Origin: Guillardia theta CCMP2712
Lineage: Eukaryota; Protista; Cryptophyta
Assembly: GCF_000315625.1 (NCBI RefSeq)
Contig: NW_005434600.1
Span: 14,352 to 52,452 of the forward strand
Direction of reading: 5' to 3'
DNA length: 38,101 nt
Shown: in pieces, positions 61 to 36,605 of the stretch
How the letters are laid out: every line of letters begins with the position of its first letter
Numbering within the stretch: the stretch's first letter is position 1
Notes under the pieces: model-generated
The model's database searches: none
What the model was told of the DNA's origin: nothing
What the model saw: only the letters and a program-made list of their open reading frames with translations
Position numbers and translations under genes: made by a program

Positions 61-2823
61 GGAAGGAGTGAAGAAAGAACAAGAATGGAGACGAAGGTTG
101 GCGGCAGGTGGGATCGTCGATGAAACGGAGAAAGAAGGAGAATGAAGGACGGAGAGGTGAGAAAGGGAGGGAGGGAGGAGAGGGAGGGAGGGAGGTAGGG
201 AGGAGAGGGAGGGAGGGAGGGAGGGAGGGAGGGTTTGGTCACATTGATATCCGAGGGAGGTACAAGGTCGCATTTGTTGAGAATGATAACGTTGGCAAAT
301 TCAATCTTGAAGTCTGTTAGCAGAATAGAAATAACGCTCCTGCTCTTGCAACCCTCCTCCTGCATTCTCCAAATTTGTCGCTCCTCGATGTTTTTTGCTC
401 CTCTCGTCTCGGCTTCTTGCTCTCCTCGTCCTCCTCTCCCTCTTCCTCCTCGTCCTCGTCCTCGTCCTCCTCTCCCTCTTCCTCCTGCTCCTGCTTCTGC
501 TCCTACTCCTTCCCCTCCTCCTCCTCCTCTTCCTCTTCCTCACCTGGTCCACGAGAAGATCTGAGAGAGTCCTTTCATCGTCCTCTCCCGTTGCCATTTT
601 CCGGTCTCTGGATGCAGTTGGACAAGAATCAGAAGAAGGGACGGAGGAAGAAGAATGCGAGGGAGGAGGTAGAGAGGAAGGAGGGAGGGGGAGGAGGGAG
701 GAGGGAGGGAGGGAGGAGGGAGGGAAAGGAGGAAGGAGGGAGGGAGGAGGGAGAGGAAGGAGGAGGGGGGAGGTGGGGGGTGAAGGCGGGTGAGGGAAGG
801 CAGAATAAATCTCCCATCACTTGAGTTTTTCCCCGCAGCTAAAATCTTTGGAGAACTGAAACGCATCGACGACAGTGACCTGCAACAACAGAGGGAGGTG
901 AGGACGAAAAGAACACATTGATCACTTGTTAGGTGACAATGCAGTATGAGGAGGGAGGGAGGGAGGGAGGGAGGAGAGAAAAGGGATAAAATATCTCCAA
1001 AGAGGTCAGGGTGAGAAGAGAGTTCCTCACTAGGACAACAGGGCTTGGAAGGAGAATGTCAACAAACAAGAATTTCAACAGACAGCAGTCATGCAGTGGG
1101 GGAGAGATTTGTTGAGTGCCGTCTCAACATACCAAGGTGTCCAATCTTGCGATCTGAGACAGATTACGACCTTCCAAGTCTTGCATCATGAAACTTTGTG
1201 CAACCTGTTCGTTTCATCACCCCAACTAGGAGGAGCGAGACAGTGGACAGCAAAGAGACGGCAAGTCACCGGGAGAGGTTCGGAGATGCCGGTGCTCTCG
1301 ATGAGGAGGTATTGAAAGCGATTCTGCACAGAACTTCATCAGCGCTTTGAGGGAAACGAGTTTGAGCTGTTGGTCATGGAAGAGCGATGAGAAGCATCTC
1401 TCGAGGCAGCCTCTATCTCATCTTCAACTGCATCTGATTCTGATCTGATCTGATCTGATCTGATCTGATCTGATCTGATCTGATCTGATCTGATCTGATC
1501 ACTCCACCACAGCATGCACATGCGCTGTCACTGCTTGCACATGCGCTCTCACCTCAAATGCAATCCTCGACACTTCATGAATCAGATCCTGTTCATCCAT
1601 CAGTAACATTCATGAATCTAGCAGCTCAACACAGTCCATACTTGTCTTAATGTACAGCATATACATCCGTTGCTCAGTTCCACAAGATTTTCTTCAGTCC
1701 TTGTCACGCTCAAATTCGCGTTATCCACAATCCACCCATCAACATTGACGTCTGAAAGAGAACCAGAAAAGTTCGTCAAAGATGTCCAAGACATACAAAT
1801 AGAAAAGTTTGTACAAGACCGGAAAACAAAAAAGATTTAGTCTTTCCCACCTGCCATGTCGTTTACAATCACTGCAACCTTGTACCCAGAGGTGTTTAGA
1901 ATCAGATGCTTCAAAAGGGTTGTCTTTCCGGCCCCAAGAAATCCACTCAAGACTGTCACAGGGAGTTTCCCCCCTCCTGCTCATTGCAAACAGGTCACCG
2001 GGACAAGCTGTGATGTGTCAGCCAACACCTGACTCATCCTTCCTCTTTGTTGGGAGTCCGTTGGAGAGCGAGCGAGACTTTGGGATCGGAGTTGTTATGC
2101 ACAGTTACAACTTCAAAACACAATCACCAAAGAAGGATTCCCTTGGCTGTATCTGCGCATCTCCGCCAAGATCCGATCCCTGTCAGCGCCTTTCTCCATC
2201 TTGGAAACCTCCTCCTCCAGTGCCAGTAGGAGATCGCGATACAACATGCTCTCCCCATCCAGCTCGAGCGCACGCGCAGCAGACATCCATGATGAGAGAA
2301 ACAGATCGTGCACCGAAGAAATGTCTCCTCCTCCTCCTCCTCCTCCTCCTCCTCCTCCTCCTCCTCTCTCCTTCAACCTATCTTGGGTGTCAAGAGAAAA
2401 CATCATCTTCAACGACGCAACACCTCGATCGCGCCAGGTCCAGCAATGCCTGGCTCATGCGGAAATGTCCCTTTGCGAACGCTGGTCTGATCTTCACGCA
2501 CCTCTCTGCATCTTCGAGAGCCTGTTCCGCTCTCTGACAGCAACAACATCTGTCATCATGGAAGAACACAACCAAGTCGTACTCACCTCAAGCTCCACAA
2601 GACATGCAGACCTGTTGGAGAGTAGCTATCGGAGAATGAGAGTCACATAGAACACGATAGATCTTTCTGCCCACCTGAGCCAACAGTTCATCATCAGGTT
2701 CCTTGCTGATTCCCTGCGTGTACGCCTCCAGGGCTCCTTGCAGATCTCCCTTTCGCAGCCTTGCGTTTCCGTTCTCCTGAGTGAAATCAGGACATCACAC
2801 ACTTGTGTTGGACATCTTGTCAT
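1..2823 (-). CDS. Multi-exon TPR-domain + COG0523 (CobW/ZigA/ZNG1-like) G3E GTPase metallochaperone; 5' start uncertain, 3' end runs off the window
   Basis: Hand-spliced minus-strand exons. TPR part: [23 protein letters not shown] (~2700-2780), [12 protein letters not shown] (~2590-2625) and [33 protein letters not shown] (~2435-2535). GTPase part: [32 protein letters not shown] (~1852-1975), [19 protein letters not shown] (~1642-1752), [15 protein letters not shown] (~1268-1312), VTVVDA (~860-878), TLSDLLVDQ (~545-570) and [15 protein letters not shown] (~260-305). GT-AG introns keep the frame. Confidence 0.9.
1434..1500. repeat. (TGATC)n microsatellite in an intron of the COG0523 gene
   Basis: About 13 tandem TGATC units. 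Confidence 0.95.
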
Positions 2824-4479
2824 CTCCAGGGAAGCAGGCGAACGAGGGAGGGCATGGCAGATGAGACAAGAAAGTCGGTGACATCAGGTGGCATCATGAT
2901 TTCAGCTGTTTCTTTCTACACGACATGTCTCCTCTGCTTTCACACGAAGCTCTGAATGCCGTGTGCTTCATCATTCCCTTATCCTCTTGCCGTCCTTTCC
3001 TTTGTGTCTTGAGCGCTTCCCTTATTTTCTTCCCTCCCCTTCCCTTCTTTCGCCTTCCATTGCCTTCTCCACTCTTCTGTTCTCTGGTTGCCTTGCCTTG
3101 CCTTGCCTTGCCTTCTTCCCTCTCCTCCCGCTGCTGTTCTCTACCCTCTGCTCGGATCCACCATGCTCTCTTCGCCCCTCCATCTCCTCACCTTGTATCG
3201 CATCGCCTCCACCAACTCTCCCGCCATCCCGCATCAAGGCCGAATGTCCTGTAGGTGATTTGGGTCGCATTATTTTTCTGTGAAATTTATAGTTTTCCAC
3301 AGTAAAATGAGACTTCAACAATAAAATACAGAGTCTTCTGGATTCTGGTCAGAGCGGGGATGACGACAAAGAAATGAGGGGGATGATGAGTGGGTCATTG
3401 GGGGGAAGAGGGGCCCTTCTTCTCTATTTCGGGCGCCATGTTCGCTGTGTTGTCGCATTTCTCTATGCTCATCGACTGTCCATCGGGCACCATGCCGGAT
3501 CCAACGTGAGGCCTCATCCCCCCCCTCCTCCTCATATCCTGCCTTATGTTTGACCAAGAGATGTTCATGATGGAGCTCGATGGGTGATGGTTCAACACAT
3601 GAATCTGACCCCATCCATCCTGTTGAAAGTGTAGAATACTCAGACATGTTCGACTTAACGTGATTGTTGTTACGCGGTGTGTAAATATGTATTAGATGAG
3701 AGAGGTTCAATTGCAAGATGAGAAAGGTTCAAAAGGCATACAGCATGTAATGAAGTGATCATTGAATTCAAGCCAAGATGAAATGTCAAATTTCGCACAA
3801 TCAGCTCGTGCCCGTCTCCTCCTCAACTACNNNNNNNNNNNNNNNNNNNNNNNNNNNNNNNNNNNNNNNNNNNNNNNNNNNNNNNNNNNNNNNNNNNNNN
3901 NNNNNNNNNNNNNNNNNNNNNNNNNNNNNNNNNNNNNNNNNNNNNNNNNNNNNNNNNNNNNNNNNNNNNNNNNNNNNNNNNNNNNNNNNNNNNNNNNNNN
4001 NNNNNNNNNNNNNNNNNNNNNNNNNNNNNNNNNNNNNNNNNNNNNNNNNNNNNNNNNNNNNNNNNNNNNNNNNNNNNNNNNNNNNNNNNNNNNNNNNACC
4101 TCCGCCAGCTTTTCGTCGTCTCAACCTTTCTGGTGTAGGCACTATCCTTCCTCTCGCTGCGTTCTGCCTTCGGTTGCCAAGATGCTCCAAGGTGAAAGTC
4201 ATTCGAGGAGTGGTTTTTATTCGGCTGAATGTCTTGCCAACAGGAACTGGGGGCTCAGACAGTGCATCTGGTTTTTAGAACCACGACTGTCATATTCTTT
4301 CATTGTACTCGTAGGGTCAGCTCATTCTTCAGGATGGGAATGACGGAACTTGAATTTGTCTAGTTTACTTTGATACAGATCAAAGCACGTTCCCGTATAC
4401 CGTCAAGGGTGGTACAGTGGCACTGGCTGCTCAGAGAACCTGCTGGATCATCATAGCCTAGGGTAATGACCAGGGATAG

Positions 4480-7400
4480 CTATCCTTGGTCAATAGCATC
4501 TGCGGATTCAGGCACTTGTTTTGCTTCGGAGTGGCTCTCCTCCTCCCCGTGCAAAGCAAGGAGGTCACACCCGTCCCTCGTACGAGTCGAAGCCTCACCT
4601 TGTCTGCTGTTCACCCTGGCTCGCTCAGACTTGTCTGACTTGCACTCCGTTCGCAATGAGGGCGAGTCTGATCCCTTGGATGCTCTCCTTCTTTTTGATA
4701 AGCGAACTTCATCCTTTAATGCATCCTGGTGCATCGTCCGCAGACCAAAAGGATTCGTTGAAAGTCCAAGCTCCATCAGAATCAACACTCTGTACCTCTG
4801 AGCTCCCTGTACCACTCTGTGGAAAGTGTGCCAAGGTACGTCATCATTTTTCCTCCAGTGTAACAGCAACCAGCTCTCCTTCCCGCCACGAGGTAAAATC
4901 CGCTCACTCTCGAACTTTCTCAGCTTTGGTGCCATGAAAAACAGCAGGTCGTGCCCATGCCTAGATAACTTCTTCACAATCTTTTTCAGCTGCGATGCAC
5001 TAACCGCCTGTCTCCGGTTCTTGAACTCTGCACCTCCCGATTTTCTACTTCCATCCTGACCGACGGGACTGTAGAAGATTCCGTCCCGTCTCTGACTATT
5101 TTTGCAACGCATGTAGCAGCCGTACGCTGTACTTTCATTTACGTGCTCTTCACCAATGCGAAGGGGAACAAGGTTCGAGAAGCACGAAGTCAAGACTTGA
5201 CGAAATCCCTCTGCAGCTTCTTGATTCTGCACCCTCTCAAGAACGTTCATAACCTTGCTCTTTACCTCCCTTCCGCAATGAAAGCTGAGAGTTGAAAGAA
5301 TGTCGTCAGGATGACTCCAGCTTGTCAACATCACAACAACCCCCCCAAACGATTCCAGCAGGTTCCCGTCCCTTTGCATCGCGTCAACCGCTGTTGGGTC
5401 ATTTGAAGGTCTCGCAGCCTCTTCATGAATCCTCGTCAAGACCGCGAGACACGATCTCTCCTTGAAGGGCTTTCCTCCACCAGCGCTGACTGCCACAGTG
5501 ATGGGATCCAACAAGGAAGAAGCAAACTTGGAGGTCAAATGGTGAATGTCAAGGCCGTGCAGAAGAAGCTTGCCATCATTTGTTTGGCTCATTTCGACGA
5601 TAGACTGTGGACTACCACGTGCAGGGACTTCACCTCCTGGCCAAGCATTCAGGAGACCGAAGCCTTGTAAGATTTGTGTCTGAGACATGGCTTCGTGCGA
5701 TGCAATCTGGAACATAGAATACAAGGATGCGTCGTTGAGATTCTTCTTGTCGGATCGTAGACGCTGCAGAACATGATAAGCTAGGTTACGAAATAAAGTT
5801 GCAGGGTCTTCCACTGATATATCGACGTTCAATCCTTCCAAGAAAACATTGCATAACCATGGGTTCACGTTGTCGAGCAACAATGAGATCTTGCCCTCCC
5901 CAAACAGTCGCTTGAGAAGAATTCTCTGCTTCGCTGATCGTAGCATCATCGGAGGGAGGGCTCGATGGGTGACGCAGATGATGGTCTGCTTGTTCTTGCC
6001 TCGGCTGTCCAACGTCTGTCGCGTAGCTTCATTGAAATTCATCACCAGAGTGTTAGTTCCTAACATGATGCAATGAAAACCCGCATTACGGAGAATTCTT
6101 TTCAGGAAATCAAGTCTGTCCAATGCGCCAACAACACCGAAGCTGCTTTTCTTCTTCTCCCTCGGAATCGCTTCATCAACCATAACCCACAACTTCTGCT
6201 GCGACATCCAGGTCCTTGCTTGCTGCACTGTTACCTTGGCGGGCGTTGTGGTCTTGCCAAACAGATAGCCGAGCGTGCCAAGAACGTTCCAACTGTAGTC
6301 CTCCAGCTTGATCGATGAGATCTCCGTCGACTCACCTGACACGATCTTGAAGACATTGATACTGCGAAAATACTGTTGAAGGTCCAGATCGATAGCTGCA
6401 TTCATGATACACGTCAGGTCTTGTACTCTTGAATAGATTTCCTGTTCGTGGACGTATTCGAACACGAAGTATAGCGAGGTCGTCGGATGTCGAGAAAAGT
6501 AGTCTGCAGCGCACAGAGATTTCCCGCTTCCCGAGCATGCCTCGATCATACATGAAACTGTAACAACATTGTCATTGCTTGCAGCTGCCACTACTCTGTC
6601 GATAGGATTGAGATAGCTGAAATTACTGTTCCTTGGTTCAAGTACATTTTTGAGGTACTCCTTCAAGCCATTAGCTGCATCTTCCAGCGAAAGGCGTGAA
6701 AGGCGAAGCTTCGAAACCAAAGCGCTTAGCACTATCAAACAGCATTCCGTCAGCATCTTTATAAAAAAAACACCCGTTCTCAGACGGGGTTGGACAAAAT
6801 AATAACAGGAAGATTACCTTGGTTGTCCGTAGGAAAAGCTAACGATGCACGATAGCTCGCAAGTTCAGAATTATGGTGGTCCAAATCTTTCTGTGCCTGG
6901 AATATCAGCTCCTCGTCCCCGCTTGCACGTGCCTGTTCCAGCTTCGCCTTCGCCACCTCCACCTCCTCTGCCAGCTTCGCCTTCGCCACCTCCACCTCCC
7001 ACGCTGATATCAGCTCCTCGTCCCTGGTTGCCCGTGCCTGTTCCAGCTTCGCCTTCGCCACCTCCACCTCCCCCGCTGATATCAGCTTCTCGTCCCCGCT
7101 TGCCCGTGCCTGTTCCAGCTTCGCCTTCGCCACCTCCACCTCCCCCGCTGATATCAGCTTCTCGTCCCCGCTTGCACGTGCCTGTTCCAGCTTCGCCTTC
7201 GCCACCTCCAGCTCCCACGCTGATATCAGCTCCTTGTCCCTGGTTGCACGTGCCTGTTCCAGCTTCGCCTTCGCCACCTCCACCTCCTCTGCCAGCTTCG
7301 CCTTCGCCACCTCCACCTCCCCCGCTGATATCAGCTCCTTGTCCCCGCTTGCACGTGCCTGTTCCAGCTTCGCCTTCGCCACCTCCACCTCCCCCGCTGA

Positions 7401-7967
7401 TATCAGCTCCTTGTCCCTGGTTGCACGTGCCTGTTCCAGCTTCGCCTTCGCCACCTCCACCTCCTCTGCCAGCTTCGCCTTCGCCACCTCCACCTCCCCC
7501 GCTGATATCAGCTCCTTGTCCCTGGTTGCACGTGCCTGTTCCAGCTTCGCCTTCGCCACCTCCACCTCCCCCGCTGATATCAGCTCCTTGTCCCTGGTTG
7601 CACGTGCCTGTTCCAGCTTCGCCTTCGCCACCTCCACCTCCCACGCTGATATCAGCTTCTCGTCCCCGCTTGCACGTGCCTGTTCCAGCTTCGCCTTCGC
7701 CGCCTGCAGTTCGCTGTTTGAAGGATTATCTGCCCCTCCTTGTATTCGCAAACAAGAGGGTTGGGAAAGCAAGCCTATCCGACGAAGGTTTGGTTGAGAA
7801 AAGGGAACTGTCAATCTCTGCTGGCAAAACAAACGATCAGCGTCTCTCCTGCGGCAGATTCGGGGCATTCTACCTCTGCGCTTGAAATGACGATTGACCC
7901 CAAACATACCAACACACAACGTGTGTGGGTTGGTATGGCTCCCAAGCGATGGCGATCGATCCCGCAT
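4480..7967 (-). CDS. Helical-repeat + P-loop NTPase + PD-(D/E)XK-like nuclease protein (Crinkler/CR-effector-like), copy A; exons ~7967-6818 and 6731-4480
   Basis: A predicted GT-AG intron (6817-6732) joins the 395-aa repeat ORF in frame to the 758-aa ORF (..PTDNQ/VLSALVSK..). Walker A-like IEACSGSGKS, Walker B VMVDE and C-terminal RRDGIFY..GGAEFKNR are visible. The true start codon is uncertain. Confidence 0.75.
6903..7715 (-). repeat. Coding minisatellite: ten 72-bp units (EVEVAKAKLEQARA[TR/SG]D[KE/EK/EE]LISA[G/W]) plus three 33-bp units (EVEVAKAKLAE)
   Basis: Units counted from the translation of ORF 6780-7967. Confidence 0.95.
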
Positions 7968-8539
7968 GCCTTCTCCCGGTGGTGGAGTATCTTCTTCCCC
8001 TGAAGCAACGGGGTGGTCATGTTAGGATTCACCAAGAGAGCATCCGCAGCAGGTAAGAGCAGTTGAGCGTGATCAGCCTTGCTCTCACTCTACCAAGTGT
8101 TGAAATCGTGATGCGAGAAATATTCAATTCACCCATGATCTTTGTGAAATTTGAATGTGTTATACTAATGTTTAGTCAACCCAATCTCAATCTGAATTCC
8201 TAGCGGTTTTCGCTGCCTCCTCCGTTTCCTAGTGTCTTATTGAGGCGGGTTTGTCGGATTTATCCTCGTCCTCCTATGTTTGCTCCGGTTTGCCTTTTCT
8301 TTTCAGTCAATAAATATAAAAAAGGAATTTATTAATCAATTTTTTATTAATCAATTTTTTTCGTACCGTTACGGAGAAGAAGGGTGCCTTTGGGGAATGT
8401 GAAGAAGTAGAGCAAGATGTAAGGGGGCAGATAGAATCAGTAAGTGGAATCTGTAAGAGATTGGATGGGAAAGAGATTGGATCTGTAAGAGATTGGTCAA
8501 CCCGAAGACCTCCTCTTGGAGTTCTGTAAGCCAACTGAT

Positions 8540-9686
8540 TACTTTGCTGTGTGAGAAGAGAGCATGTTGCTTGTCAGCTTCGGAGTTGAGCACGAAATCG
8601 CAGTCCAACCCCTGAGAAGATCAAGAGTTGCTGGCAAGACGGGGGTTGGTTTCTTTGTACATGAGGAAATGCTCGCACCAGCAAATGTCTTCGTTGCTGA
8701 TAATGAAGCAAAAAGCTACTTGAAGTTTCAGTCAAACATGTCTCTAAGGTCTGGCGTCAGGCATGTTTACAGAAGGAACAACCACTCAAAGACTTTCGGT
8801 GGAAGATTGATACAACCATATATTGGAGTCCTACAAAGGTCTTCATAGATGAGGCGGCAGTAGGTGTCACGAAACTAAGCTCGGGAAAGGATGCAAATCC
8901 GTTGACGGAAGAGAATTACATAGGCATAAGAAGATAGGATCGTGGGCAGCCTGACATATGTCACATTGAGTTGGGATGTCATCTGTAGATCCGTGAATAC
9001 GGTTCAGATCCTGCTGCATGCAACACATCTGATGGCAAGATGATCATATGTTCGTTGGAGTTCCGAGCCTGGAGGATTTGAAACGCAACATTGCAGAAAA
9101 CAACGATTCAGTCGCAGGCATGCTGAAGGAGATTCCGGAGATAGGGCAACATGCGACAGAACACCAGGAACAGGAAGAGGAACCTGACCTCGGAGATGTA
9201 AAAGCTGGCGCACTGCTGAATCGGAGCACTGTACAGTGTGTCAATGGCGATCGAGCTGGCGTTCGTCACACTGTGACTCAGACTGATCAAGCTGATCTGA
9301 AAACGATTCGAATTTCTGGTGAAGCGAAATGTTTCAACAGTGCATGGAATCTGTATCACTCTGGCAAACATGCCAAAGGGATACCTCCTTCGGAGAAACT
9401 GCAACGAGCAAATTTTAACAGAGCATGAAGCAAATGGTTTGCAGGCATAGCTTATCTCATGAAGTGCTTTGACCAATTCATCCGGCGAAGTGTAATGGAA
9501 CTGAATTCCTTCTTTGATAGTCGGTGAGAATCTTTGATGTTTCAAGGCCAAGATGAAACATTCAAGAAATATCCAAAGGATTTCATCTCGTGGCTCAATC
9601 AGAGAGAAGGGGCAGAGAGCTCAAGTGATAGGAGTGGGCAGTTTGCACAGGCAACGTACTTCAAGAAAATGCGAAAGTGTGTTTGA
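8540..9686 (+). pseudogene. Degenerate, internally deleted Crypton-like tyrosine-recombinase transposon ORF
   Basis: Fragments across frames: SLRSGVRHVYRR (~8740), GVTKLSSGKDA (~8865), TYVTLSWDVICRSVNTVQILLH (~8954-9019; resembles the LSWNLMCR..N first catalytic Arg motif of stramenopile Cryptons) and AWNLYHSGKHAKGIPP (~9342-9390). Stops and frameshifts are present; no HxxR/Y region is seen. Confidence 0.6.
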
Positions 9687-9918
9687 GTCTTGGACCTCTG
9701 AGGCGGGTGTGTGAGTGTTTGAGGGTAGGGAGGGAGGGAGGGTGAGGTCCTAAACTGGTCTTTGGGTGGGGTAGGGGTCATATTCGGAAGGAGTTTATGT
9801 GAATTAGCACTAAACCTCTCAAAAAACTACAAAAGTGTATATATTTGTCCGGACTACATCTTATTACACCTCTAAACCTCTAAATTAGTGGTATGGTGCA
9901 CTGACAGAAAAGTTGCAA

Positions 9919-10618
9919 AATTTTAATGATTGACAGTGCAACGTGCAATGTACCGGTACTATCCAGCCCATTGGATCGGCAGGGGTACTGCATTCAATGC
10001 AATCCAGCAGAGCAAATGATGCCATGTTGCAGGAGCGACAACGACGACAAGAAAGGGCATTTGACCTAATAGAGAACAAAGTCATCGCTGATAGTACGAA
10101 GAAAGTTTACCGATGCAAGATCAATAGGATCGTGCGTCTGTTACTGAAAGTGAACCCCAGGGCTGTCGACGAGGACGGCGAATTGATACTCCCAAAGGCA
10201 TGGAAAGATTTGAAGAGTTTGTTTGGAGACCTTGTCACCAATACTGACTTACCAAAATCTAGAAGGAGAAGAGGAGGTCAAGAGCAGGAAGAGCAGGAAG
10301 AGCAGGAAGAGCAGGAAGAGCAGGAAGAGCAGGAAGAGCAGAAAGAGCAGGAAGAGCAGGAAGAGCAGGAAGAGCAGGAAGACGAAGATCAGGATTTTAT
10401 TTTCCCTCAGAAGACGCCGTGCAAAAGTATGTGGCAGAAATGGCACCTAGGGCAAGAGGAGAAGATTAATGGAGAATGGAAGCGTATTGGTCCACTCAAA
10501 GCTTTGCACAATTATTTTGACAAAATAACGTTGTGAATGCAGTACCACCCACTCCTGCCCATCCAATGGGCTGGATAGTACCGGTACATTGCACGTTGCA
10601 CTGTCAATCATTAAAATT
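9919..10618 (+). mobile_element. 700-bp unit bounded by ~80-bp inverted repeats, carrying a deleted Crypton-like ORF (9943/9997-10536)
   Basis: IRs at 9919-9996 and 10534-10618. The ORF has IADSTKKVYRCKINRI..DGELILP..LFG fused through a (QEE)n tract to DFIFPQKTPCKSMWQKWHLG..IGPLKAL. No TSD is visible. Confidence 0.6.
10279..10382 (+). repeat. (GAAGAGCAG)n coding repeat, about 11 units
   Basis: Read directly. Confidence 0.95.
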
Positions 10619-12099: not shown

Positions 12100-12874
12100 A
12101 TTTATTCATTCACGCAAAGATGATGGCACATCAGGCTTGCATCTTCAGCATTGATAAGAACTTTTATAAGTAGCATAAATGTTTGTGCTACCCCTACTAA
12201 ACAGTTCAAGTACCCTGGTAAAATCATGCCCTGCTTTCCAAAGGTATTTTAAATTTTCGAAATCTATCTGTTTTAGGGCCCTTTTAGTGCGCCGAAAAAA
12301 TTGATAAGTTAATAAATTCCTTTTTTATATTTATTGACTGAAAAGAAAAGGCAAACCGGAGCAAACATAGGAGGACGAGGATAAATCCGACAAACCCGCC
12401 TCAATAAGACACTAGGAAACGGAGGAGGCAGCGAAAACCGCTAGGAATTCAGATTGAGGTTGGGTTGACTAAACATTAGTACAACACATTCAAATTTCAC
12501 AAAGATCATGGGTGAATTGAATATTTCTCGCACCACGATTTCAACACTTCAAGAAGAGTTTCAAAAGAGTTCACGGCGTGACAAGCAGTAGTAGTTGGGA
12601 GGATTTCACAGTGCTCCCAAGTATTTCAGAGGTGCGAAATCAGAGTCTGGCTATATTTTCAAATCCATGGCCTTTGGTTGGGCGCAATACACAAACTCAC
12701 AAAACATTTTATCAACAAGGTTCTCTTGCACGCGGCAAATGACGGCTGGTAGAGTGAGAGCAAGGCTGATCACGCTCAACTGCTCTTACCTGCTGCGGAT
12801 GCTCTCTTGGTGAATCCTAACATGACCACCCCGTTGCTTCAGGGGAAGAAGATACTCCACCACCGGGAGAAGGC

Positions 12875-15755
12875 ATGCGGGATCGATCGCCATCGCTTGG
12901 GAGCCATACCAACCCACACACGTTGTGTGTTGGTATGTTTGGGGTCAATCGTCATTTCAAGCGCAGAGGTAGAATGCCCCGAATCTGCCGCAGGAGAGAC
13001 GCTGATCGTTTGTTTTGCCAGCAGAGATTGACAGTTCCCTTTTCTCAACCAAACCTTCGTCGGATAGGCTTACTTTCCCAACCCTCTTGTTTGCGAATAC
13101 AAGGAGGGGCAGATAATCCTTCAAACAGCGAACTGCAGGCGGCGAAGGCGAAGCTGGTATCAGCGGGGGAGGTGGAGGTGGCGAAGGCGAAGCAGCGTGG
13201 GAGGTGGAGGTGGCGAAGGCGAAGCTGGAACAGGCACGTGCAACCAGGGACAAGGAGCTGATATCAGCGTGGGAGGTGGAGGTGGCGAAGGCGAAGCTGG
13301 AACAGGCACGTGCAACCAGGGACAAGGAGCTGATATTCCAGGCACAGAAAGATTTGGACCACCATAATTCTGAACTTGCGAGCTATCGTGCATCGTTAGC
13401 TTTTCCTACGGACTACCAAGGTAATCTTCCTGTTATTATTTTGTCCAACCCCGTCTGAGAACGGGTGTTTTTCTTATATAGATGCTGACGGAATGCTGTT
13501 TGATAGTGCTAAGCGCTTTGGTTTCGAAGCTTCGCCTTTCACGCCTTTCGCTGGAAGATGCAGCTAATGGCTTGAAGGAGTACCTCAAAAATGTACTTGA
13601 ACCAAGGAACAGTAATTTCAGCTATCTCAATCCTATCGACAGAGTAGTGGCAGCTGCAAGCAATGACAATGTTGTTACAGTTTCATGTATGATCGAGGCA
13701 TGCTCGGGAAGCGGGAAATCTCTGTGCGCTGCAGACTACTTTTCTCGACATCCGACGACCTCGCTATACTTCGTGTTCGAATACGTCCACGAACAGGAAA
13801 TCTATTCAAGAGTACAAGACCTTACGTGTATCATGAATGCAGCTATCGATCTGGACCTTCAACAGTATTTTCGCAGTATCAATGTCTTCAAGATCGTGTC
13901 AGGTGAGTCGACGGAGATCTCATCGATCAAGCTGGAGGACTACAGTTGGAACGTTCTTGGCACGCTCGGCTATCTGTTTGGCAAGACCACAACGCCCGCC
14001 AAGGTAACAGTGCAGCAAGCAAGGACCTGGATGTCGCAGCAGAAGTTGTGGGTTATGGTTGATGAAGCGATTCCGAGGGAGAAGAAGAAAAGCAGCTTCG
14101 GGGTTGTTGGCGCATTGGACAGACTTGTTTTCCTGAAAAGAATTCTCCGTAATGCGGGTTTTCATTGCATCATGTTAGGAACTAACACTCTGGTGATGAA
14201 TTTCAATGAAGCTACGCGACAGACGTTGGACAGCCGAGGCAAGAACAAGCAGACCATCATCTGCGTCACCCATCGAGCCCTCCCTCCGATGATGCTACGA
14301 TCAGCGAAGCAGAGAATTCTTCTCAAGCGACTGTTTGGGGAGGGCAAGATCTCATTGTTGCTCGACAACGTGAACCCATGGTTATGCAATGTTTTCTTGG
14401 AAGGATTGAACGTCGATATATCAGTGGAAGACCCTGCAACTTTATTTCGTAACCTAGCTTATCATGTTCTGCAGCGTCTACGATCCGACAAGAAGAATCT
14501 CAACGACGCATCCTTGTATTCTATGTTCCAGATTGCATCGCACGAAGCCATGTCTCAGACACAAATCTTACAAGGCTTCGGTCTCCTGAATGCTTGGCCA
14601 GGAGGTGAAGTCCCTGCACGTGGTAGTCCACAGTCTATCGTCGAAATGAGCCAAACAAATGATGGCAAGCTTCTTCTGCACGGCCTTGACATTCACCATT
14701 TGACCTCCAAGTTTGCTTCTTCCTTGTTGGATCCCATCACTGTGGCAGTCAGCGCTGGTGGAGGAAAGCCCTTCAAGGAGAGATCGTGTCTCGCGGTCTT
14801 GACGAGGATTCATGAAGAGGCTGCCAGACCTTCAAATGACCCAACAGCGGTTGACGCGATGCAAAGGGACGGGAACCTGCTGGAATCGTTTGGGGGGGTT
14901 GTTGTGATGTTGACAAGCTGGAGTCATCCTGACGACATACTTTCAACTCTCAGCTTTCATTGCGGAAGGGAGGTAAAGAGCAAGGTTATGAACGTTCTTG
15001 AGAGGGTGCAGAATCAAGAAGCTGCAGAGGGATTTCGTCAAGTCTTGACTTCGTGCTTCTCGAACCTTGTTCCCCTTCGCATTGGTGAAGAGCACGTAAA
15101 TGAAAGTACAGCGTACGGCTGCTACATGCGTTGCAAAAATAGTCAGCGACGGGACGGAATCTTCTACAGTCCCGTCGGTCAGGATGGAAGCAGAAAATCG
15201 GGAGGTGCAGAGTTCAAGAACCGGAGACAGGCGGTTAGTGCATCGCAGCTGAAAAAGATTGTGAAGAAGTTATCTAGGCATGGGCACGACCTGCTGTTTT
15301 TCATGGCACCAAAGCTGAGAAAGTTCGAGAGTGAGCGGATTTTACCTCGTGGCGGGAAGGAGAGCTGGTTGCTGTTACACTGGAGGAAAAATGATGACGT
15401 ACCTTGGCACACTTTCCACAGAGTGGTACAGGGAGCTCAGAGGTACAGAGTGTTGATTCTGATGGAGCTTGGACTTTCAACGAATCCTTTTGGTCTGCGG
15501 ACGATGCACCAGGATGCATTAAAGGATGAAGTTCGCTTATCAAAAAGAAGGAGAGCATCCAAGGGATCAGACTCGCCCTCATTGCGAACGGAGTGCAAGT
15601 CAGACAAGTCTGAGCGAGCCAGGGTGAACAGCAGACAAGGTGAGGCTTCGACTCGTACGAGGGACGGGTGTGACCTCCTTGCTTTGCACGAGGAGGAGAG
15701 ACACTCCGAAGCAAAACAAGTGCCTGAATCCGCAGATGCTATTGACCAAGGATAG
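12875..15755 (+). CDS. NTPase + PD-(D/E)XK-like nuclease protein, copy B; repeat exon contracted and frameshifted (~13192); 757-aa ORF 13482-15755 intact
   Basis: Predicted intron 13421-13506. The ORF differs from copy A only at DRLD/DRLV and HGEEESHS/HEEERHS. The upstream exon is split into ORFs 12875-13261 and 13204-13458. Confidence 0.7.
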
Positions 15756-16132
15756 CTATCCCTGGTCATTACCCTAGGCTATGATGATCCAGCAGGTTCT
15801 CTGAGCAGCCAGTGCCACTGTACCACCCTTGACGGTATACGGGAACGTGCTTTGATCTGTATCAAAGTAAACTAGACAAATTTCCGTCATTCCCATCCTG
15901 AAGAATGAGCTGACCCTACGAGTACAATGAAAGAATATGACAGTCGTGGTTCTAAAAACCAGATGCACTGTCTGAGCCCCCAGTTCCTGTTGGCAAGACA
16001 TTCAGCCGAATAAAAACCACTCCTCGAATGACTTTCACCTTGGAGCATCTTGGCAACCGAAGGCAGAACGCAGCGAGAGGAAGGATAGTGCCTACACCAG
16101 AAAGGTTGAGACGACGAAAAGCTGGCGGAGGT

Positions 16133-16558
16133 GATGTTGCAGGGAGAGGGAGAAGAGGAGGAGGAGCAGCAGGATTAGGGAGAAAAAACGCAGGAGGAGC
16201 GAGGGAGCGGCGTGCGAAGAAGAGCAGGAGCAGGATAAGGGTGCAGCGGAAGAGCAGCAGGAGGGAAAGGAGACCGCGGAAGAGCGGGAGCAGCATGCGG
16301 AGGAGGGAGAGCAAGAGGGAGAGCAGGAGAGGATCAGGAGGAAGAGGAAGAGAAGGAGGAGGATCAGAAGGATGAGTAAGAGAAGGGGGGAGAAGAAGAG
16401 CAGGAGGGGAGGAGGAGGAACAAGGGGGGGGGAGGAACAGCAAGAGGGACAGGAACAGCAGGAGGAGGAAGGGAAAGGAACAGCAGGAGACGGAAGGGGA
16501 AGAGCAGCAGGGAAGGGAAGAGCAGGAGGAGGAGGAGGAGGAGGAGGAGGAGGAGGAG

Positions 16559-16600
<42 letters not shown>

Positions 16601-16761
16601 GCCCAGGACGAGGAGGAGGAAGACGAGGACGAGAACGAGGAGGACGAGGACGAGGAGGACGAGGAGGCCCAGGACGAGGACGAGGAGGACGAGGACGAGG
16701 ACGGGGACGAGTAGGAGGAGGAGGAGGAGGAGTACGAGTATGAGGACGAGGACGAGGTCGG

Positions 16762-16809
<48 letters not shown>

Positions 16810-16920
16810 GCAGGAGGAGGATGAGTAGAAGGAGGAGGATGAGTAGGAATAGGAGGAGAAGGACGAGGACGAGGACGAGGACGAGGAGGACGAGGAGGAG
16901 GATGAGGAGGAGGAGGGGGA
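16133..16920. repeat. Low-complexity (GAG)n/(GAGGAC)n purine tract
   Basis: Read directly. It explains the Ser-, Pro-Arg- and Gly-Arg-rich overlapping ORFs here. Confidence 0.9.
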
Positions 16921-17689
16921 TGAGGCCTCACGTTGGATCCGGCATGGTGCCCGTTCTGGGAGGCTTTCCAACGAGACCCTGTGAAATGGTAACAATCGTT
17001 TAATGAGTAAAGACGCAAGCTATTCCTGGGAAGATGCCGGGGAAGCCGAACGCAACAACTTGCCGACGGCAAAGGCCTTGAAGCCTCGGCCTCGGAGGGA
17101 GGCAGAGGGGCACTGCCGGATGGAGGAGCTGTGTGCAAAGAGGCAGTGCTGATACTGGCACGTCTGTCTGAAATTTCGGGAGGGAATTTGAATGTGTTGT
17201 ACTAATAGGAGTCACATAGTAGTGTGAGCAGCTGTCACGAGGCCGCACGGTTCCGGGGTCACTAAGATCAAACCCGCGTAACTTCAACCTGAAGGGTCAA
17301 CCGAGATCACGGCACGGGCACGGCTGCCACCCCATGACACCCCCGACAGCTTCTTCCGACCTCCCTACGGCTACAAAATGACGTCTTCTCGAACACCCTT
17401 GGACTTAGCGGAGTAACGAAAAGCATTGTTTTCAGGTTTGAGGATATTTACTACAACTGACTTTGTAAGCCTTCGTATCCGCTGACCGGGCAGCACCACC
17501 AACCTCTCGTGGTAAAAGGTGCTTCACAGCACCGGTACATGTATCAGGAATTGGAAAGATTCAGGGGGTGGTTTTTCAGTAGTCGCTTCTTCATGCTCCC
17601 AGGGGTGGGTCTTCTCCGGAATCCGCTCCCGATTTGTTGATTCCGCACCCCTAGTAATCCCATAAGATATCGACGGGGGTAGGGTCAGG

Positions 17690-19230: not shown

Positions 19231-21026
19231 TAGGGCGCCTCCAAAAAAAGCTTAGGATTCTCTTTTTTGGTAAAATTTGAAAAAAAAAAAATTGCAGTTG
19301 ATGGACACATTTATCGCGAAACATGCATAGTTTCAGTACCTTGCACGCATTGTTGGCGTGATCGTTTGAAATGCCTAAGGTTCAAAACTCTGGTACTAAT
19401 TTGTACCGGCGATCAGTACTGATAATTGAGTAAATTACATATATATGCGGTACACTTATTTGTACCAGTTACTCTCTTTAATATTAATATATATAGAATT
19501 CTCTCCTTTTTTTTTGACTTAGTGAAAGAATCTTGAAGCGCCCTGCGAGATCCAGTCCTTGTATCAGGCCGCGCCTCACGGCAGTGCCGTTCTTCAACGG
19601 GATCGGATACCGTACCGATGCCCCCACGCGGCCCATCATCCGATCCAGAGTCGTCAGTCTGGTACCCCTCCTCCGAGGCTTTATCAGTGAAGGTAGGGTA
19701 CTCGAGGGTACTTCCGGGCCCCGCAGCCTGTTCAATTCGTTCGGTGTCCGACCGCAATGCTCAAATTGTATGGAAAAGTCAATCAAAAATTAAAATTCTG
19801 TCTAAATCTCATTGGGTTAACCAGCGAAACTGACATCTGCCAGGGCCCCCTTTCGCTGGATCCCCCGTTATAGCCGCCTCGGTGTAAAGGCCTTGGCCCC
19901 CCGTTCCGCAATCAGTTGGCGATTCCGCGAGCAACACTTATTTTGCACTCGAAAATCTGCCATGGATTATTGAAAATAGACAATAAATTTTCAAATTGTA
20001 CCTTTCTTTTTCATATCATTCGTTTGAATTTGCGACCATTATCCCCGCCAACATTTACAACCCCTCAGATTTCCCTGCCTTTGTATGTAATTTACTACGC
20101 CTGGTACCATATGAAGGGAATTTGAGTAATTTTTGTATTGGCACCATCCACCCCCACCCCGCCTCCAATCAATCCACCCTCTTCTCAAAATTACTCACTA
20201 TTTACCCCACCCTACCCCACCGTGATATTCACACCGATCCTTTTTCTCCCATGACAGCTCTGACCCCTACCTTATCGATGATCCCACCACCCCTGAACGA
20301 ATACCCACCCACCCATCGTAATCAGACGGTTCAACTGAGAAACGAGTTCTTCTCCACCCTACCCACCAGGATCCCAATTGCAACAAATACCCTACTGTCA
20401 CTTTCGACTCGATTACCTCTCAAAACCATGGGTAGTATCACTACCTACCGTCTAACGACACATTCGAACTCCCTGCTGCCACCCCACCCCTCCACATGAA
20501 AAGGATATAGACTGACTCTGAATACCCCACCCCATCCCCACCCTTTGCACCCCCTCGTCATCCCTTGCACTGTAGCCCAGTTCAGGGTACCCCCACCCAC
20601 GATGATCCACTTCACCCACCCACATTGTGTAAAACACGATACTCCACCCCCCTTTCAGTAAGTACCCCCCACCCCACCCCCGAGCTCAACCCCGTCAAAC
20701 GTGGCTTTTCCCCAGTTTGTGTCCCCCGAAAGTATCAGCGACTGCTTCCTTCCCACCCGCATCTCTGCCCTCCCACTTCATCCGCCGCTTCCTCCCCCTC
20801 CTCGCTCTTTCTTCTTCTCATTCACTTCTGATCATCCCCTCCGATTCGTCAGGCTTTCATCCCACCTCATCTCATTTCTTTCTCACAGCCCAACTCTCTT
20901 TCATTGGTCGTTCATCTCAAATTGTTCTGGACCAGGGGTGTCTAGTTTAACGACCTGTGCTGTGACGGTTGATATCGCATTGGGATTTGTCTTCTACAGA
21001 AACAAGTCTTGATAGCAAGCAACCTG

Positions 21027-21968
21027 ATGAGTCGTGAGAGAATGGTAGAGTTTGTGGCGGGCGCTGCGTCGGGATTTGTTGCAGACGGTGTAACGCACCC
21101 TGTGGACACTGTTCGAACAAGATTGTGGGTTCAAGGGGAAGGGACAGCTTACAGGTATTCTGGATTGCTTCATGGAACAGTAGACATGGTGAAGAAAGAG
21201 GGATTGCCCTCGCTCTTCAAAGGTTTCGGAAGCGTCGCATTGCTGACTCCTTTAGCGCATGGTCTTTACTTTGGATCATATGAATGGTTCAAGCGAACAC
21301 TAGGACACCGGAAAGGCGGCCTAGGCCTCGGAGACTCCTCCAACGCTATGATCTCAGGATTCTTTGCGAATGGAGTCGGAGGTCTGGTGTGGAATCCGAT
21401 GGACGTGGTGAAGCAGAAGCAACAAGCCAACGTCGGCAGCTTGTACAAAAGTCCATTGAATGGGCTCGTTGAGGTTTGGAGGGAGGGAGGCATGTGCCGG
21501 GGTTTGATGAAAGGATATTGGTCGGGAATGGCAACATATGGGCCATTTTCAGCTATTTACTTCATGATGTACGAGAACTGGAAAGTAGCATGCATGAAAT
21601 GGACTACGCAGCATGCGCGGCACGACGAGCTTAACACAGGACACTACGTAGCAGGAGGATTCATAGCTGGGAGTGCTGCAGCTGTTGCGACAGCTCCAAT
21701 CGATCTGATCAAGACGAGGATACAAGTTTGCGATCATTACTCAGGAATGTACTCCACCGCAACACGCATAATCAAGGAAGAAGGCTACGGAGTTTTCACC
21801 AAAGGACTTGGAGCAAGGATATTGTGGGTAGCTCCAGGTTGTGCGATCACCATTGCAGTGTTTGAAGACATTCGAAAGTTTTGTTCGAGTGCCTCAGACT
21901 TCGGTAGTGATGGTTACTCTAGCCTGGACATGTCGTCTGTTACAGATGGATCAGCTTTCACAGTATGA
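21027..21968 (+). CDS. Mitochondrial carrier family (SLC25) protein, intronless
   Basis: Three Px[DE]xx[KR]x[RK] signatures (PVDTVRTR, PMDVVKQK, PIDLIKTR), the KEG..LFKG and EEG..FTKG motifs, and ~313 aa. Substrate not assigned. Confidence 0.95.
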   Translation: MSRERMVEFVAGAASGFVADGVTHPVDTVRTRLWVQGEGTAYRYSGLLHGTVDMVKKEGLPSLFKGFGSVALLTPLAHGLYFGSYEWFKRTLGHRKGGLGLGDSSNAMISGFFANGVGGLVWNPMDVVKQKQQANVGSLYKSPLNGLVEVWREGGMCRGLMKGYWSGMATYGPFSAIYFMMYENWKVACMKWTTQHARHDELNTGHYVAGGFIAGSAAAVATAPIDLIKTRIQVCDHYSGMYSTATRIIKEEGYGVFTKGLGARILWVAPGCAITIAVFEDIRKFCSSASDFGSDGYSSLDMSSVTDGSAFTV

Positions 21969-33433: not shown

Positions 33434-36400
33434 ATGTCTGCTTGTGACGCAAGGGCGCTATGGCGGGGAGACGCGCGTCCCTTCCTCACTCACTGCTTCG
33501 ACGACATCTTCCTCTTCGGAGCAGCCACCGTCTTTATCTTCATGTTCGGCTCCTACCGGGCATGGACGCTCCTCCACATCCCCCCTATGGAGGAATTTCC
33601 CTACTCCACCATGCACAGTGTGAAAGTGATGGTCCTCGGATGGCTGGGCATGTTTCCTCTGATTGTGTTTGCGGCCAAGTATGCCAACGGTGCTCATGAT
33701 GACTTCGAGTGGATCGCAAAGCCCCTTGCCTCCTCGGCATGGCTGTACAGCCTTTGGCTCTTCAACATGGAGGTTTCTCGCAACCTCACAGAGTAAGTTC
33801 GACGCTCTGCTGCGTTCCTCCTCCTCCTCCTCTTTCTGCTGCTTCTGCTGTTTCTGCTGGTGCTCCCCCCCTCCTGCTTCTGCTCCTGCTCCTGCTCCTC
33901 CTTCTCCTCCTTCGGTACAAGTTAACATCTAATCACTGCAAGCGTCGGTATGACTGCCGTTCGTTCCCTAACGCCCTATGAAGGTGTTGGATCCTCAAAA
34001 CTTTCTGGGCCACGTCAGCAATTGCTGGGACCTTCAGCCTGCCAACGGTTGTGATCGCATCGGAGACCAACGGGTGACGATGAAAACTTGCGATCTCGAT
34101 CTCGTGCCTGATCCGATGCCCCCTTGGTTTCTCAGCTACGGCCTTTCCTTTTATGCCTACCTCCTCCACTACGTCCTTTACCTCGTGATCGTCGTCCTCG
34201 CCTTCCGCTTTCCACACCAGTCCAAAGGTGAGAGGAGCGCGGGAATGACGATGCGACGACGTTGACGGGAGGACGAGCAGACGTGGCGCCAGAGCTGGGC
34301 ACCTTGCAGGACGCCCAGTCCAAGATGGAGGGAGCAGAGGGGAAGGATCGAAACCAAGAGCACTTGGGCTTCCTTACGGTAGATCTCCGTGCTCTCTAAG
34401 GTCTGTGAGCGATGGGTGACGTTGAGATCAGGAGGTGTGGAGAGATCGGTTCTGGAAGGTCCTCAGCATGTTTGAGCCCGAGAAGCTCTTGCTCTCCTTG
34501 TCCTTCCTGTACGTCCCTGCCTCTCCCTCTCTGCTCTGCTCTGCTTGTCCTTCCTGTACGTCCCTGCCTCTCCCTCTCTGCTCTGCTCTCCTTCTATTCA
34601 TCTTAGTCCTCTCCATCAATTCCTCTCCTACGTCCTTCCACTCTCCTCCCCACCTCTACTCGGTTTCTCTCCTCGCTACTCCTCTGCTCTGCTCTGCTCT
34701 GCTCCGCTCTCCTGTCCTCTTCCTCGTCTCCCTTCCTCTTTCTCATCCTCTACCCGCAGGTGCATGATAGCTTCAGTTGCGTCCTCCGGCTTCGCCTTTG
34801 TCATCCTCGGCCGTCTCTTCAACAACTTCTACTATCCTTACTCCCCAGGATCCGCCAGGGGGCATCTGAGAGAATACTGCGTGATCTTGGTGGCTATCTA
34901 TCTGATCTGCTCGATCCTCGACGCCGCCTATGCCACCATCATCCACAACGCGGAGGAGAGGATGGCGTCGAGGACGAGGAGGAAGGTCTTCCACAACCTG
35001 CTGCGGCAGGAAGTAGAGTTCTTCGACGGGAAGAAGCCCGAGGAGCTTGTGGAGAGCATACAGAACGACGTGGCACTGCTGCAGAAGACACTCGGGGACC
35101 ACATGATACATGGCCTCCACTGCATCCTCACAGTCTTGATGTGCATCTTCATTATGTTCATGATCAGCTGGAAGATCACTCTTGTGGTCCTGTCCCTGGT
35201 CCCGATCTGCATGCTCGTCGGCAAGATCCAGAAGTTTTACGCCAGGAGGCTAGGTAAGGAGAGAGCGGAGGCGATGGCTACTTCGATGGAGCTGGTGGAG
35301 GAGACTCTGTCCAGCCTTCGCATCGTCCGCTCGCTCGCTGCGGAGTCCCGACAGCTCGAGAAGTTCAAGGAGATGGCAGCGGATATCTACGACCTCTCCC
35401 TCCAGACCGGGCTGGTGGACGCAACTTCCAAGAGTTCCGCAACGCTCATGATACAGCTCGCCGTCGTCCTGTCACTCTACGTTAGCGGGCTGGCCGTCCT
35501 GTCCCGCCAGGTCGAAGTCGGCTACCTCGTCACGTACGCTGGCGTTACCATCCTTGCGATCTCAAGCATCGCCCAGCTGTCGCCCCTCCTGAGGCAGATT
35601 ACCAAGGCGCTCAGGGCCTCTGAGAGAGTTTTTCACCTACTCGATCGATCTCCCAAGTTCGGCGGCAGCGGAGGAAGCACCATGGAGAAGGTGGACGGGA
35701 GGATCGAGATGAGGGAGGTGGACTTGTTCCCCGATGCTCCGAGCAGCGACAAGCTCCTCAGCTCAGTCTCGATCTCGGCCGGGAGCATCGCGGCCATCGT
35801 GGGGGGAAGGGGAGCAGGGAAGACTCGGCTCATGGAGAGCATGCAGCGCATGCAGGAGCCGGCAGGCGGCAGCATCCTGCTGGATGGGAGTGACGTGAAG
35901 GCGCTGGACCCTGACTGGCTGAGGGAGCATGTGGTGGCCGTGCAGACAGAGCCTGTCCTGTTCGCCATGAGCATCGCGCAGAACATCTCGTATGCTGTCG
36001 AGACGGCGTCGCAGGCGCAGGTAGAAGCTGCTGCTCGTCTCGCCTGCGCCCACGAGTTCATCCAGCTCATCCCCGACAGCTACCAGGCGCATGTCGGGGA
36101 CACAGGTGTGCGGCTGACGGCCATGCAGAAGCTGCAGGTTGCGATCGCAAGAGCCTGGCTGACAACAGCCAACGTCATCCTCCTGGACGACGTGTTCTCT
36201 CGGATGGACGCTGAGACTGCAAGGAGGATCCTTTCCAACCTGCGGGGACGACGGGGCGACCGGACGGTCATCATATTCTCCTCCTCTTCCAGCCTTCTCG
36301 AGGGTACGTGCGACTCTTTCTCCTACCTCGAGGGAGGACGGCTGTTGGGGACAGGCTCCCACGGTGAGCTCGCTGCCGTTTTCCCGTCCTACGCCCAGCT

Positions 36401-36605
36401 CGCTGACCGCCACGGCTCCTCCCAAGATGCCTCCCACGCCGAGGAGGCGGAGGAGGGAGTGTGGAGGAGGCGGCTCCAGCTGGCCGACGAGCTGGAGGAC
36501 AGTATCTTCCAGCTGGGGTTGCCGCAGGGAAAGGTGATGGCGCTGGTGGAGATGGCGAACGAGATGAAGGAGGCGCTCGTCCTGGAGTCCCAGACCCTCG
36601 GCTAG
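33434..36605 (+). CDS. ABCB-type half transporter with extra N-terminal TMD0 and degenerate nucleotide-binding domain
   Basis: Exons approx. 33434-33792, 33984-34072, 34136-34227, ~34310-34378, 34432-34508 and 34760-36605. TMD motifs FHNLLRQEVEFFD and ASERVFHLLDR; NBD motifs GGRGAGKT, GSILLDG.DV, EPVLFAMSIAQNISY, AHEFI, VGDTGVRLTAMQK and VILLDD. Confidence 0.9.
34497..34589. repeat. 47-bp tandem duplication spanning an exon/intron donor of the ABC gene
   Basis: CTTGTCCTTCCT/GTACGTCCCTGCCTCTCCCTCTCTGCTCTGCTCT at 34497 and 34544. Confidence 0.9.

Follow-up and report, generated by a model that had tools for sequence, protein, structure and literature searches.

Results

This analysis concerns a 38,101-nt stretch of contig NW_005434600.1 (positions 14,352 to 52,452 of the forward strand; referred to below as the window and numbered from its first letter) and a gene on its minus strand whose spliced product of ~1,100 aa places a header of tandem helical repeats in front of a nucleoside triphosphatase (NTPase) core and a C-terminal restriction endonuclease (REase)-type domain. 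Our results confirm that this is a real and intact gene, that it is duplicated within the window, and that it belongs to a family of NTPase-nucleases that is undescribed and whose repeat header is novel. A first-pass annotation of the same DNA had proposed two spliced open reading frames (ORFs) with a repeat header, Walker A- and B-like motifs, an LGTN strand and a C-terminal D..ExK motif, and translation together with Tandem Repeats Finder (TRF) recovered all of these at the positions it gave. Coordinates of the features are collected in Table 1.

The two exons were searched separately, exon 1 as 6819-7967 and exon 2 as 4483-6729, both on the minus strand. For comparison we used L001, the genomic locus of the G. 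theta protein P0002 (GUITHDRAFT_113579, 997 aa); L004, on G. theta JH993012.1 (paralog GUITHDRAFT_110897); L005, on G. theta scaffold JH993119.1; L007, a metagenome contig with a 95%-identical relative; and several further loci. L004 and L008 are deep paralogs. Exon 1 aligned to P0002 residues 23-343 with 36% identity over 338 aligned columns (E 3e-19), and exon 2 to residues 355-995 with 55% identity over 669 aligned columns. The intron between the header and core ORFs splits a Val codon, and its removal restores the frame between the two. L001 has an intron of 83 nt that interrupts this Val codon in an identical phase, and the position and phase are also kept in L011, L007, L004 (where the intron is 48 nt), L008 and both window copies. 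Header exons with a variant repeat were found upstream of the paralogs in L004, L005 and L008. Because the header/core intron and the upstream header exons are common to deep paralogs, the gene comparison indicates that the fusion of header and core is ancestral to the cryptophyte family. Splicing at 6732-6817, the junction that the first-pass annotation had predicted, is likewise supported by comparison between relatives, and the family as a whole is transcribed, as transcript-derived proteins from MMETSP and from Hanusia phi are among the relatives.

The 5′ end of the gene is less certain. Window positions 7869-7906, at the donor side of an interval upstream of the repeats, are 84% identical to L004 7578-7615, and a block on the acceptor side (7735-7758) is also conserved with L004. 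Reading through the interval that matches 7739-7873 is closed by a stop in L004, whereas the read-through stays open in the window. These observations suggest a further phase-1 intron at 7739-7873, which is not proven because of the open read-through; the ATG at 7967 must be taken as unverified because the conserved splice-site blocks fit such an intron.

The header array of copy 1 comprises 10.3 copies of a 72-nt period, with 177-nt higher-order units that are 98% identical to one another (TRF). Header length ranged from ~3 units in window copy 2 to more than 10 units in copy 1, with a span of ~280-1,450 nt across loci. The first-pass annotation did not recognize this type of header, and we found no credible match to any known family in Pfam, NCBIfam, PADLOC, PHROGs or PDB sequence searches. 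One match did exceed its threshold: the NCBIfam model PirA_Argsyn scored 64.9 bits against the header (6819-7967) at a cut-off of 50. We rejected it as an artifact because the score sums five partial repeat matches to 20 of 48 model positions; it is a repeat-driven false positive of a kind that automatic annotation could spread. A ubiquitin-like lead was also dropped. At its start the header exon has a short motif, also present in G. theta paralog 110897, whose last two residues are glycines; it is reminiscent of the C-terminus of ubiquitin and would have tied the gene to Crinkler-type headers. Pfam scans (E <= 10) covering exon 1 and every upstream stop-to-stop piece from the window, L001, L004 and L005 returned no ubiquitin-like or Crinkler domain. 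A conserved 3′ splice site appears to be the better explanation of the two-glycine motif.

An AlphaFold2 (AF2) model of exon 2 had a predicted local distance difference test score (pLDDT) of 74 and a predicted template modeling score (pTM) of 0.74. Its best Foldseek matches in the NTPase region were NLRC4, CED-4, Apaf-1/Dark, plant NLRs (WRR4A), ORC/Cdc6 and TnsC (E 4.6e-5 to 1e-3, probability 0.95-1.0, at a whole-chain template modeling [TM] score of only ~0.2), and a DnaB-like helicase ATPase was also returned. Alignments to the NLR and Apaf-1 chains covered 440-680 columns and extended past the P-loop core. In an alignment that included distant relatives, G69 and K70 of Walker A, D185 and E186 of Walker B, and T225 were each present in 13 of 13 sequences, and N226 in 11 of 13. 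The AAA+ and STAND clades are told apart by an arginine finger and sensor 2 in the former and by a winged helix with a conserved histidine in the latter; H345 was conserved in 15 of 16 members of the cryptophyte group and in 8 of 13 distant relatives. Pfam gave weak, sub-threshold matches in family members, most often to AAA_22 (12 of 30 members) and also to NPHP3_N, AAA_16 and TniB; neither NACHT nor NB-ARC was among these sub-threshold matches. The Walker A, Walker B and sensor-1 elements and the modeled fold together support an ASCE-division P-loop NTPase of the STAND/AAA+-like kind, as the first-pass annotation had expected for this part of the protein.

The C-terminal domain, modeled alone, reached a pLDDT of 91.7 and a pTM of 0.87. 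Its core consists of H9-22, E43-47, E56-59, E70-75, H84-95 and E101-106, with an extra short strand (E26-29) after the first helix, and thus has an alpha-beta-beta-beta-alpha-beta order. D549 lies just before core strand 2 (E56-59), and E568 and K570 lie in core strand 3 (E70-75). R541, D549 and E568 were conserved in 13 of 13 sequences of the alignment with distant relatives, and K570 in 12 of 13. The best fold matches in the PDB were MspJI, AspBHI, BamHI, NucS and PaqCI (Foldseek, E 0.016-0.1), and in BFVD an Mrr-like protein (E 1.4e-3), phage restriction endonucleases and RPB5 N-domains; restriction and Mrr-type enzymes stood at the top of both lists, with probabilities of 0.85-0.99, E values of only 1.4e-3 to 4e-2 and 11-16% identity. 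The model supports the PD-(D/E)xK-type fold anticipated by the first-pass annotation, with D..ExK on consecutive strands. From residue 666 onward pLDDT falls below 50, and basic clusters also occur near the C-termini of the paralogs; this tail is disordered and may carry a nuclear localization signal (NLS).

The gene that the first-pass annotation placed at 4480-7967 is not single. We found a second, inverted copy whose core is identical to that of copy 1 at 755 of 758 positions (99%) and whose header is reduced to ~3 repeat units with one frame change in the header exon. No third copy was found in the 38-kb window. The duplicated unit comprises the whole gene with ~350 nt downstream and ~380 nt upstream, and its two arms, 97-99% identical to each other, surround a spacer of ~4 kb; the arms differ mainly in the length of the repeat array and by one insertion of ~200 nt. 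Both arms and the unique spacer fall within a single gap-free stretch (4098-26331), and neither the arms nor the spacer contain a transposase or recombinase domain. The ratio of nonsynonymous to synonymous substitution (dN/dS) between the two window copies was ~0.1, a value resting on only 8 differences. After the right arm there is a strand-skewed tract of low complexity (15950-17140; GC skew +0.56, AT skew +0.68), in which ORFs read as runs of serine and of proline/arginine. Its counterpart at the left arm is the assembly gap (3831-4097), which probably exists because of a similar low-complexity tract. The spacer holds an ORF of 197 aa (9943-10536, plus strand) with a long Glu/Gln repeat and a weak match to DUF4820 (E 9e-4).

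A word search returned 15 relatives (best E = 1e-224), none with a Pfam domain. The named ones came only from Guillardia theta and Hanusia phi, all labeled "hypothetical" or "uncharacterized"; one was an unlabeled MMETSP transcript and the rest were environmental or run-assembly sequences. An exhaustive profile search among 1.84 billion representative proteins, in a library that carries no names, gave 59 matches, comprising ~40 close relatives or fragments and ~20 distant relatives that are full-length, at 630-880 aa. The latter shared 14-18% identity with the window protein, kept its whole architecture, and had catalytic residues that were invariant or nearly so; their sources include GCA_047514055.1, ERZ25074583 and Logan runs. 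Together with the best E of 1e-224, this conservation shows that the features of the gene did not arise by chance. Word-index searches with alignments of these distant relatives produced no further named proteins; a profile built from the whole divergent alignment varied too much to be of use in scanning loci. No mention of the three G. theta locus tags was found in the literature. By these comparisons the family is previously undescribed and known mainly from cryptophyte algae. A viral origin was considered and rejected, as the viral contigs of IMG/VR held no relative of the protein and no copy of the upstream block described below.

Within the family, at least three to four deep paralogs occur per organism, and one JGI sample contained four, at 95, 56, 40 and 38% identity. 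Local duplication is recurrent: in addition to the inverted pair in the window, there is a tandem triple in G. theta L005, of which only the first copy has a header, and a 99.9%-identical tandem pair in ERZ25074583 (L002). Relative to the 95%-identical orthologue in L007, dN/dS was ~0.5. Several gene models and neighborhoods deserve mention. The two 569-aa models in L005 (of the GUITHDRAFT_119728 type) start after Walker A, and similarity begins upstream of the annotated start; the GUITHDRAFT_110897 model starts at an internal Met and leaves out an in-frame repeat header exon upstream (L004 7653-8057). The L002 tandem pair adjoins a reverse transcriptase (RT)/RNase H retroelement gene, upstream segments are duplicated in L012 (also ERZ25074583), and in L013 (Logan SRR21427517) DEAD/ResIII and Helicase_C ORFs lie directly downstream on the same strand.

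Upstream of the gene is a conserved segment of ~114 nt (block B), which is 88% identical to G. theta L004 6827-6940 and 82% identical to L007 6093-6193 (minus strand), with flanks that cannot be aligned. It precedes a family gene in the window and in L004; in L007 it is directed toward an unrelated ORF of 290 aa, which neighbors a NifS/IscS-like ORF. Block B does not code in a shared frame. We also rejected it as a structured RNA, as Rfam returned no match and folding gave nothing stable (z = +0.57). It may act as a promoter or form a 5′ leader module. Outside the gene itself there was no synteny with G. theta, and the homology between the window and L007 ends ~30 nt past the stop codon, where the downstream contexts differ. 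Elsewhere in the window are a mitochondrial carrier gene (21009-21968, plus strand; Mito_carr, E 3e-56) and a gene for an ABC transporter half-molecule (34545-36605, plus strand; ABC_membrane and ABC_tran); these ordinary eukaryotic genes flank the locus and fit an algal nuclear chromosome.

Table 1. Features of the duplicated NTPase-nuclease gene in the window, with one related locus
Feature	Position	Strand	Basis or remark
Gene copy 1	4480..7967	(-)	ORFs, homologues; both exons collinear with G. theta P0002
Core ORF, 758 aa	4480..6756	(-)	Open reading frame
Header ORF, 395 aa	6780..7967	(-)	Open reading frame
Possible short first coding exon, unverified; ATG at 7967 or 7907	7874..7967	(-)	Donor region conserved with L004
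Possible upstream intron, GT..AG, 135 nt, phase 1	7739..7873	(-)	Inferred; donor and acceptor blocks conserved with L004
Header exon: ~300 aa of Ala/Lys/Glu-rich helical repeats, then non-repeat tail up to the donor site	6818..7738	(-)	
Header/core intron, GT..AG, 86 nt, phase 1	6732..6817	(-)	
Core exon: 749 full codons (4483-6729) and stop codon	4480..6731	(-)	
Tandem repeat array, 72-nt/24-aa unit; 105-nt and 177-nt higher-order units	6902..7709	(-)	TRF
P-loop NTPase core, exon-2 residues 56-255, strands b1-b5	5965..6564	(-)	DSSP of model, Foldseek
Walker A, ACSGSGKS	6517..6540	(-)	Translation; after strand 1
Walker B, WVMVDE	6172..6189	(-)	Translation
Strand b4 ending GTN (HCIMLGTNT), sensor-1-like polar residues	6049..6075	(-)	Translation
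Helical linker with beta-hairpin, residues 256-499; possible winged helix	5233..5964	(-)	DSSP
PD-(D/E)xK (restriction-endonuclease-fold) domain, residues 500-665	4735..5232	(-)	Domain model, Foldseek
Putative catalytic D549 (5083-5085) and E568-x-K570 (5020-5028)	5020..5085	(-)	Translation, alignment
Conserved R541	5107-5109	(-)	Just beyond the catalytic range 5020-5085
Low-confidence C-terminal tail with basic KRRR cluster, NLS-like by inference	4483..4734	(-)	
Gene copy 2, inverted; core ORF intact, 757 aa	12875..15755	(+)	
Left arm of inverted duplication	4098..8345		Outer end hidden by N gap 3831-4097
Right arm of inverted duplication	12295..16132		97-99% identical to left arm
Conserved upstream block B	8201..8314	(-)	Second copy 12330-12443 (+)
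Three tandem family copies at scaffold end	L005 (JH993119.1) 1839-5386, 5682-7532, 7851-9701		Only the first with header

Discussion

We consider it probable that the window gene encodes a ~1,100-aa nuclease that is switched by NTP, acts in the nucleus and belongs to a lineage-specific conflict or defense family with a variable helical-repeat head. In this reading, the protein would run from 24-residue helical repeats through a STAND/AAA+ NTPase, a helical linker and a PD-(D/E)xK nuclease of the Mrr/MspJI-like type to a basic, NLS-like tail. Nucleotide binding and hydrolysis at K70 and D185/E186 would then act as a conformational or oligomerization switch that licenses cleavage of nucleic acid in the nucleus by the metal site at D549/E568-x-K570, and the fast-changing header may serve as a module for interaction, sensing or multimerization. 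The role of such a protein would lie in genetic conflict, either as a defense against viruses and mobile DNA or as a selfish or addictive function. The narrow family, its deep paralogs, its local duplications, the variable header length and a dN/dS of ~0.5 support a conflict-like mode of evolution.

A number of points weigh against this interpretation. What speaks for a defense role is analogy and evolutionary pattern, and a dN/dS of 0.5 could reflect decay because the metagenome copy in L007 has one frame change. In the searches named above, neither domain scored above threshold against a curated family. Fold matches to REases are weak, at best E 1.4e-3 in BFVD and 1.6e-2 in the PDB with a TM of ~0.3, and nucleoside phosphorylases of low probability take up much of the PDB list. 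A winged helix at residues 309-392 of the linker is possible in the model, where it is assigned from secondary structure, and the NLS is assigned from the basic composition of the tail. No transcript was found across the header/core junction. Furthermore, a header-less product, made by intron retention or from an internal start, is possible because the transcript-derived protein ORFs of Hanusia phi begin right at the junction and because an in-frame ATG (6756) lies inside the intron just upstream of its 3′ splice site, as it does in L008 (at 709).

Among known systems, STAND NTPases (NLRC4, Apaf-1/CED-4/Dark and plant NLRs) gave the best structural matches to the NTPase and the helical region that follows it. 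Bacterial Avs proteins couple a STAND NTPase to Mrr or other REase effectors. The window protein would combine, as these do, a nucleotide-driven switch with a repeat module and an effector, but the order is inverted, with the repeats N-terminal and the nuclease C-terminal; the Walker B motif has the form hhhhDE and is followed by a GTN strand, and the repeats are 24-residue helical units rather than LRR, WD40 or TPR. The nuclease part, for its part, shares the helix-three-strand-helix-strand core and the D...ExK signature of the type IV restriction endonucleases Mrr, MspJI and AspBHI, a similarity at the level of the fold; unlike these, the window protein is eukaryotic, is fused to an NTPase and contains no DNA-modification reader domain. 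By analogy, then, it would work most like the STAND-type NTPase-nuclease conflict proteins with their domain order inverted. It is tempting to go further and propose that cryptophytes and a few other protists independently assembled an "inverted" NLR-like receptor, in which a header that expands and contracts rapidly senses an invader and the STAND-type NTPase activates the fused Mrr-like nuclease in the nucleus. Such a receptor would be a eukaryotic counterpart of Avs-type STAND-nuclease defense, in clusters that arise by local tandem and inverted duplication like those of plant NLRs; we give this more specific proposal a small but real chance of being correct.

Other origins for the gene must be weighed against the conflict nuclease. 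The first-pass annotation had raised a transposase-like protein, and a mobile-element protein, a fusion of a TnsC/TniB-like ATPase with a TnsA-like REase that propagates itself by cutting DNA, would make the duplications traces of movement. Tn7-type systems do pair an AAA+ ATPase (TnsC/TniB) with a PD-(D/E)xK nuclease (TnsA), Foldseek matched TnsC (9g0f, 7mbw), one relative (P0062) has a weak TniB match in Pfam, another (P0049) adjoins an RT/RNase H gene, near-identical local copies occur in three organisms, and the homology to L007 breaks off shortly after the stop codon. Coupled NTPase and REase domains have also been tied to prokaryotic transposable elements in the account given in PMC5289972. 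However, in the window protein both domains sit in one polypeptide, and we found neither a transposase or recombinase partner in the arms or spacer nor terminal inverted repeats or target-site duplications at the arm ends, where the N gap conceals the left arm's outer end. There are just two copies in 38 kb and few per genome, there are no relatives in IMG/VR, and old paralogs (36-56% identity) share ancient introns in position and phase, as expected for resident host genes. We therefore regard a mobile-element protein as unlikely and set the transposase-like suggestion aside; a transposon origin, though possible, is unsupported. A housekeeping factor for nuclear replication, repair or recombination, in which an ORC/Cdc6-like loader is coupled to a nuclease with no part in conflict, would account for the matches to ORC, Cdc6 and a DnaB-like helicase ATPase, for the intact core ORFs with their conserved catalytic residues, and for the low dN/dS between the window copies (from just 8 differences). 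It is decidedly less easy to reconcile with the extremely narrow phyletic range, several divergent paralogs per genome, the lack of conserved synteny with G. theta, and a variable header that is broken in one window copy, and we judge it improbable.

The first-pass annotation had likened the gene to Crinkler-RHS-type (CR) effectors, in which a delivery header precedes an NTPase, a helix-turn-helix (HTH) and an REase that act as a toxin module against other organisms. According to Zhang et al. 2016, as summarized in PMC5289972, NTPase, HTH and REase form the commonest C-terminal module of CR proteins, with the nuclease taken as the active end and the NTPase as its regulator. That part of the comparison stands only at the level of domain order: in the window protein a variable N-terminal header is followed by a P-loop NTPase, a helical region (where an HTH is suggested by secondary structure) and a PD-(D/E)xK nuclease, and CR proteins have been reported from free-living eukaryotes too. 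The header is where the resemblance fails. In place of a ubiquitin-like header or an LxLFLAK-type leader there is a tandem helical-repeat array, and the N-terminus as read contains no hydrophobic leader. The gene moreover has intron-bearing paralogs in a phototrophic alga and an NLS-like tail, and we found no link to CR proteins in sequence, as the 59 profile matches are unnamed and nothing annotated as Crinkler appeared in the word searches. Because the ubiquitin-like header is absent and these searches found no such link, we do not class the gene among CR proteins, and a CR effector is in our view very improbable. One might also suspect that the inverted copy or the whole arrangement is an assembly artifact and the gene a decaying pseudogene: a scaffold gap abuts the left arm, the header of copy 2 has collapsed and has a frame change, and the metagenome relative likewise has one. 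This is scarcely credible when both arms and the spacer lie in one gap-free stretch, when the arms show 1-3% divergence and indels, which a fold-back chimera would not, and when both core ORFs are intact across ~750 codons.

NTPase-regulated nucleases recur in immunity and conflict, as in the bacterial STAND/Avs proteins, the Crinkler toxin module and the regulators of Tn7. The family described here extends this theme to cryptophytes. Its header is of a new kind, no sequence relationship to known families is detectable, and none of Pfam, NCBIfam, PADLOC or PHROGs models it. Were it merely a lineage-specific nuclease, the family would still be worth modeling and naming. If it does consist of immune or conflict genes, it would offer an entry into the antiviral and anti-transposon biology of a major and little-studied algal lineage, and a clean case of repeat-number variation combined with local duplication.

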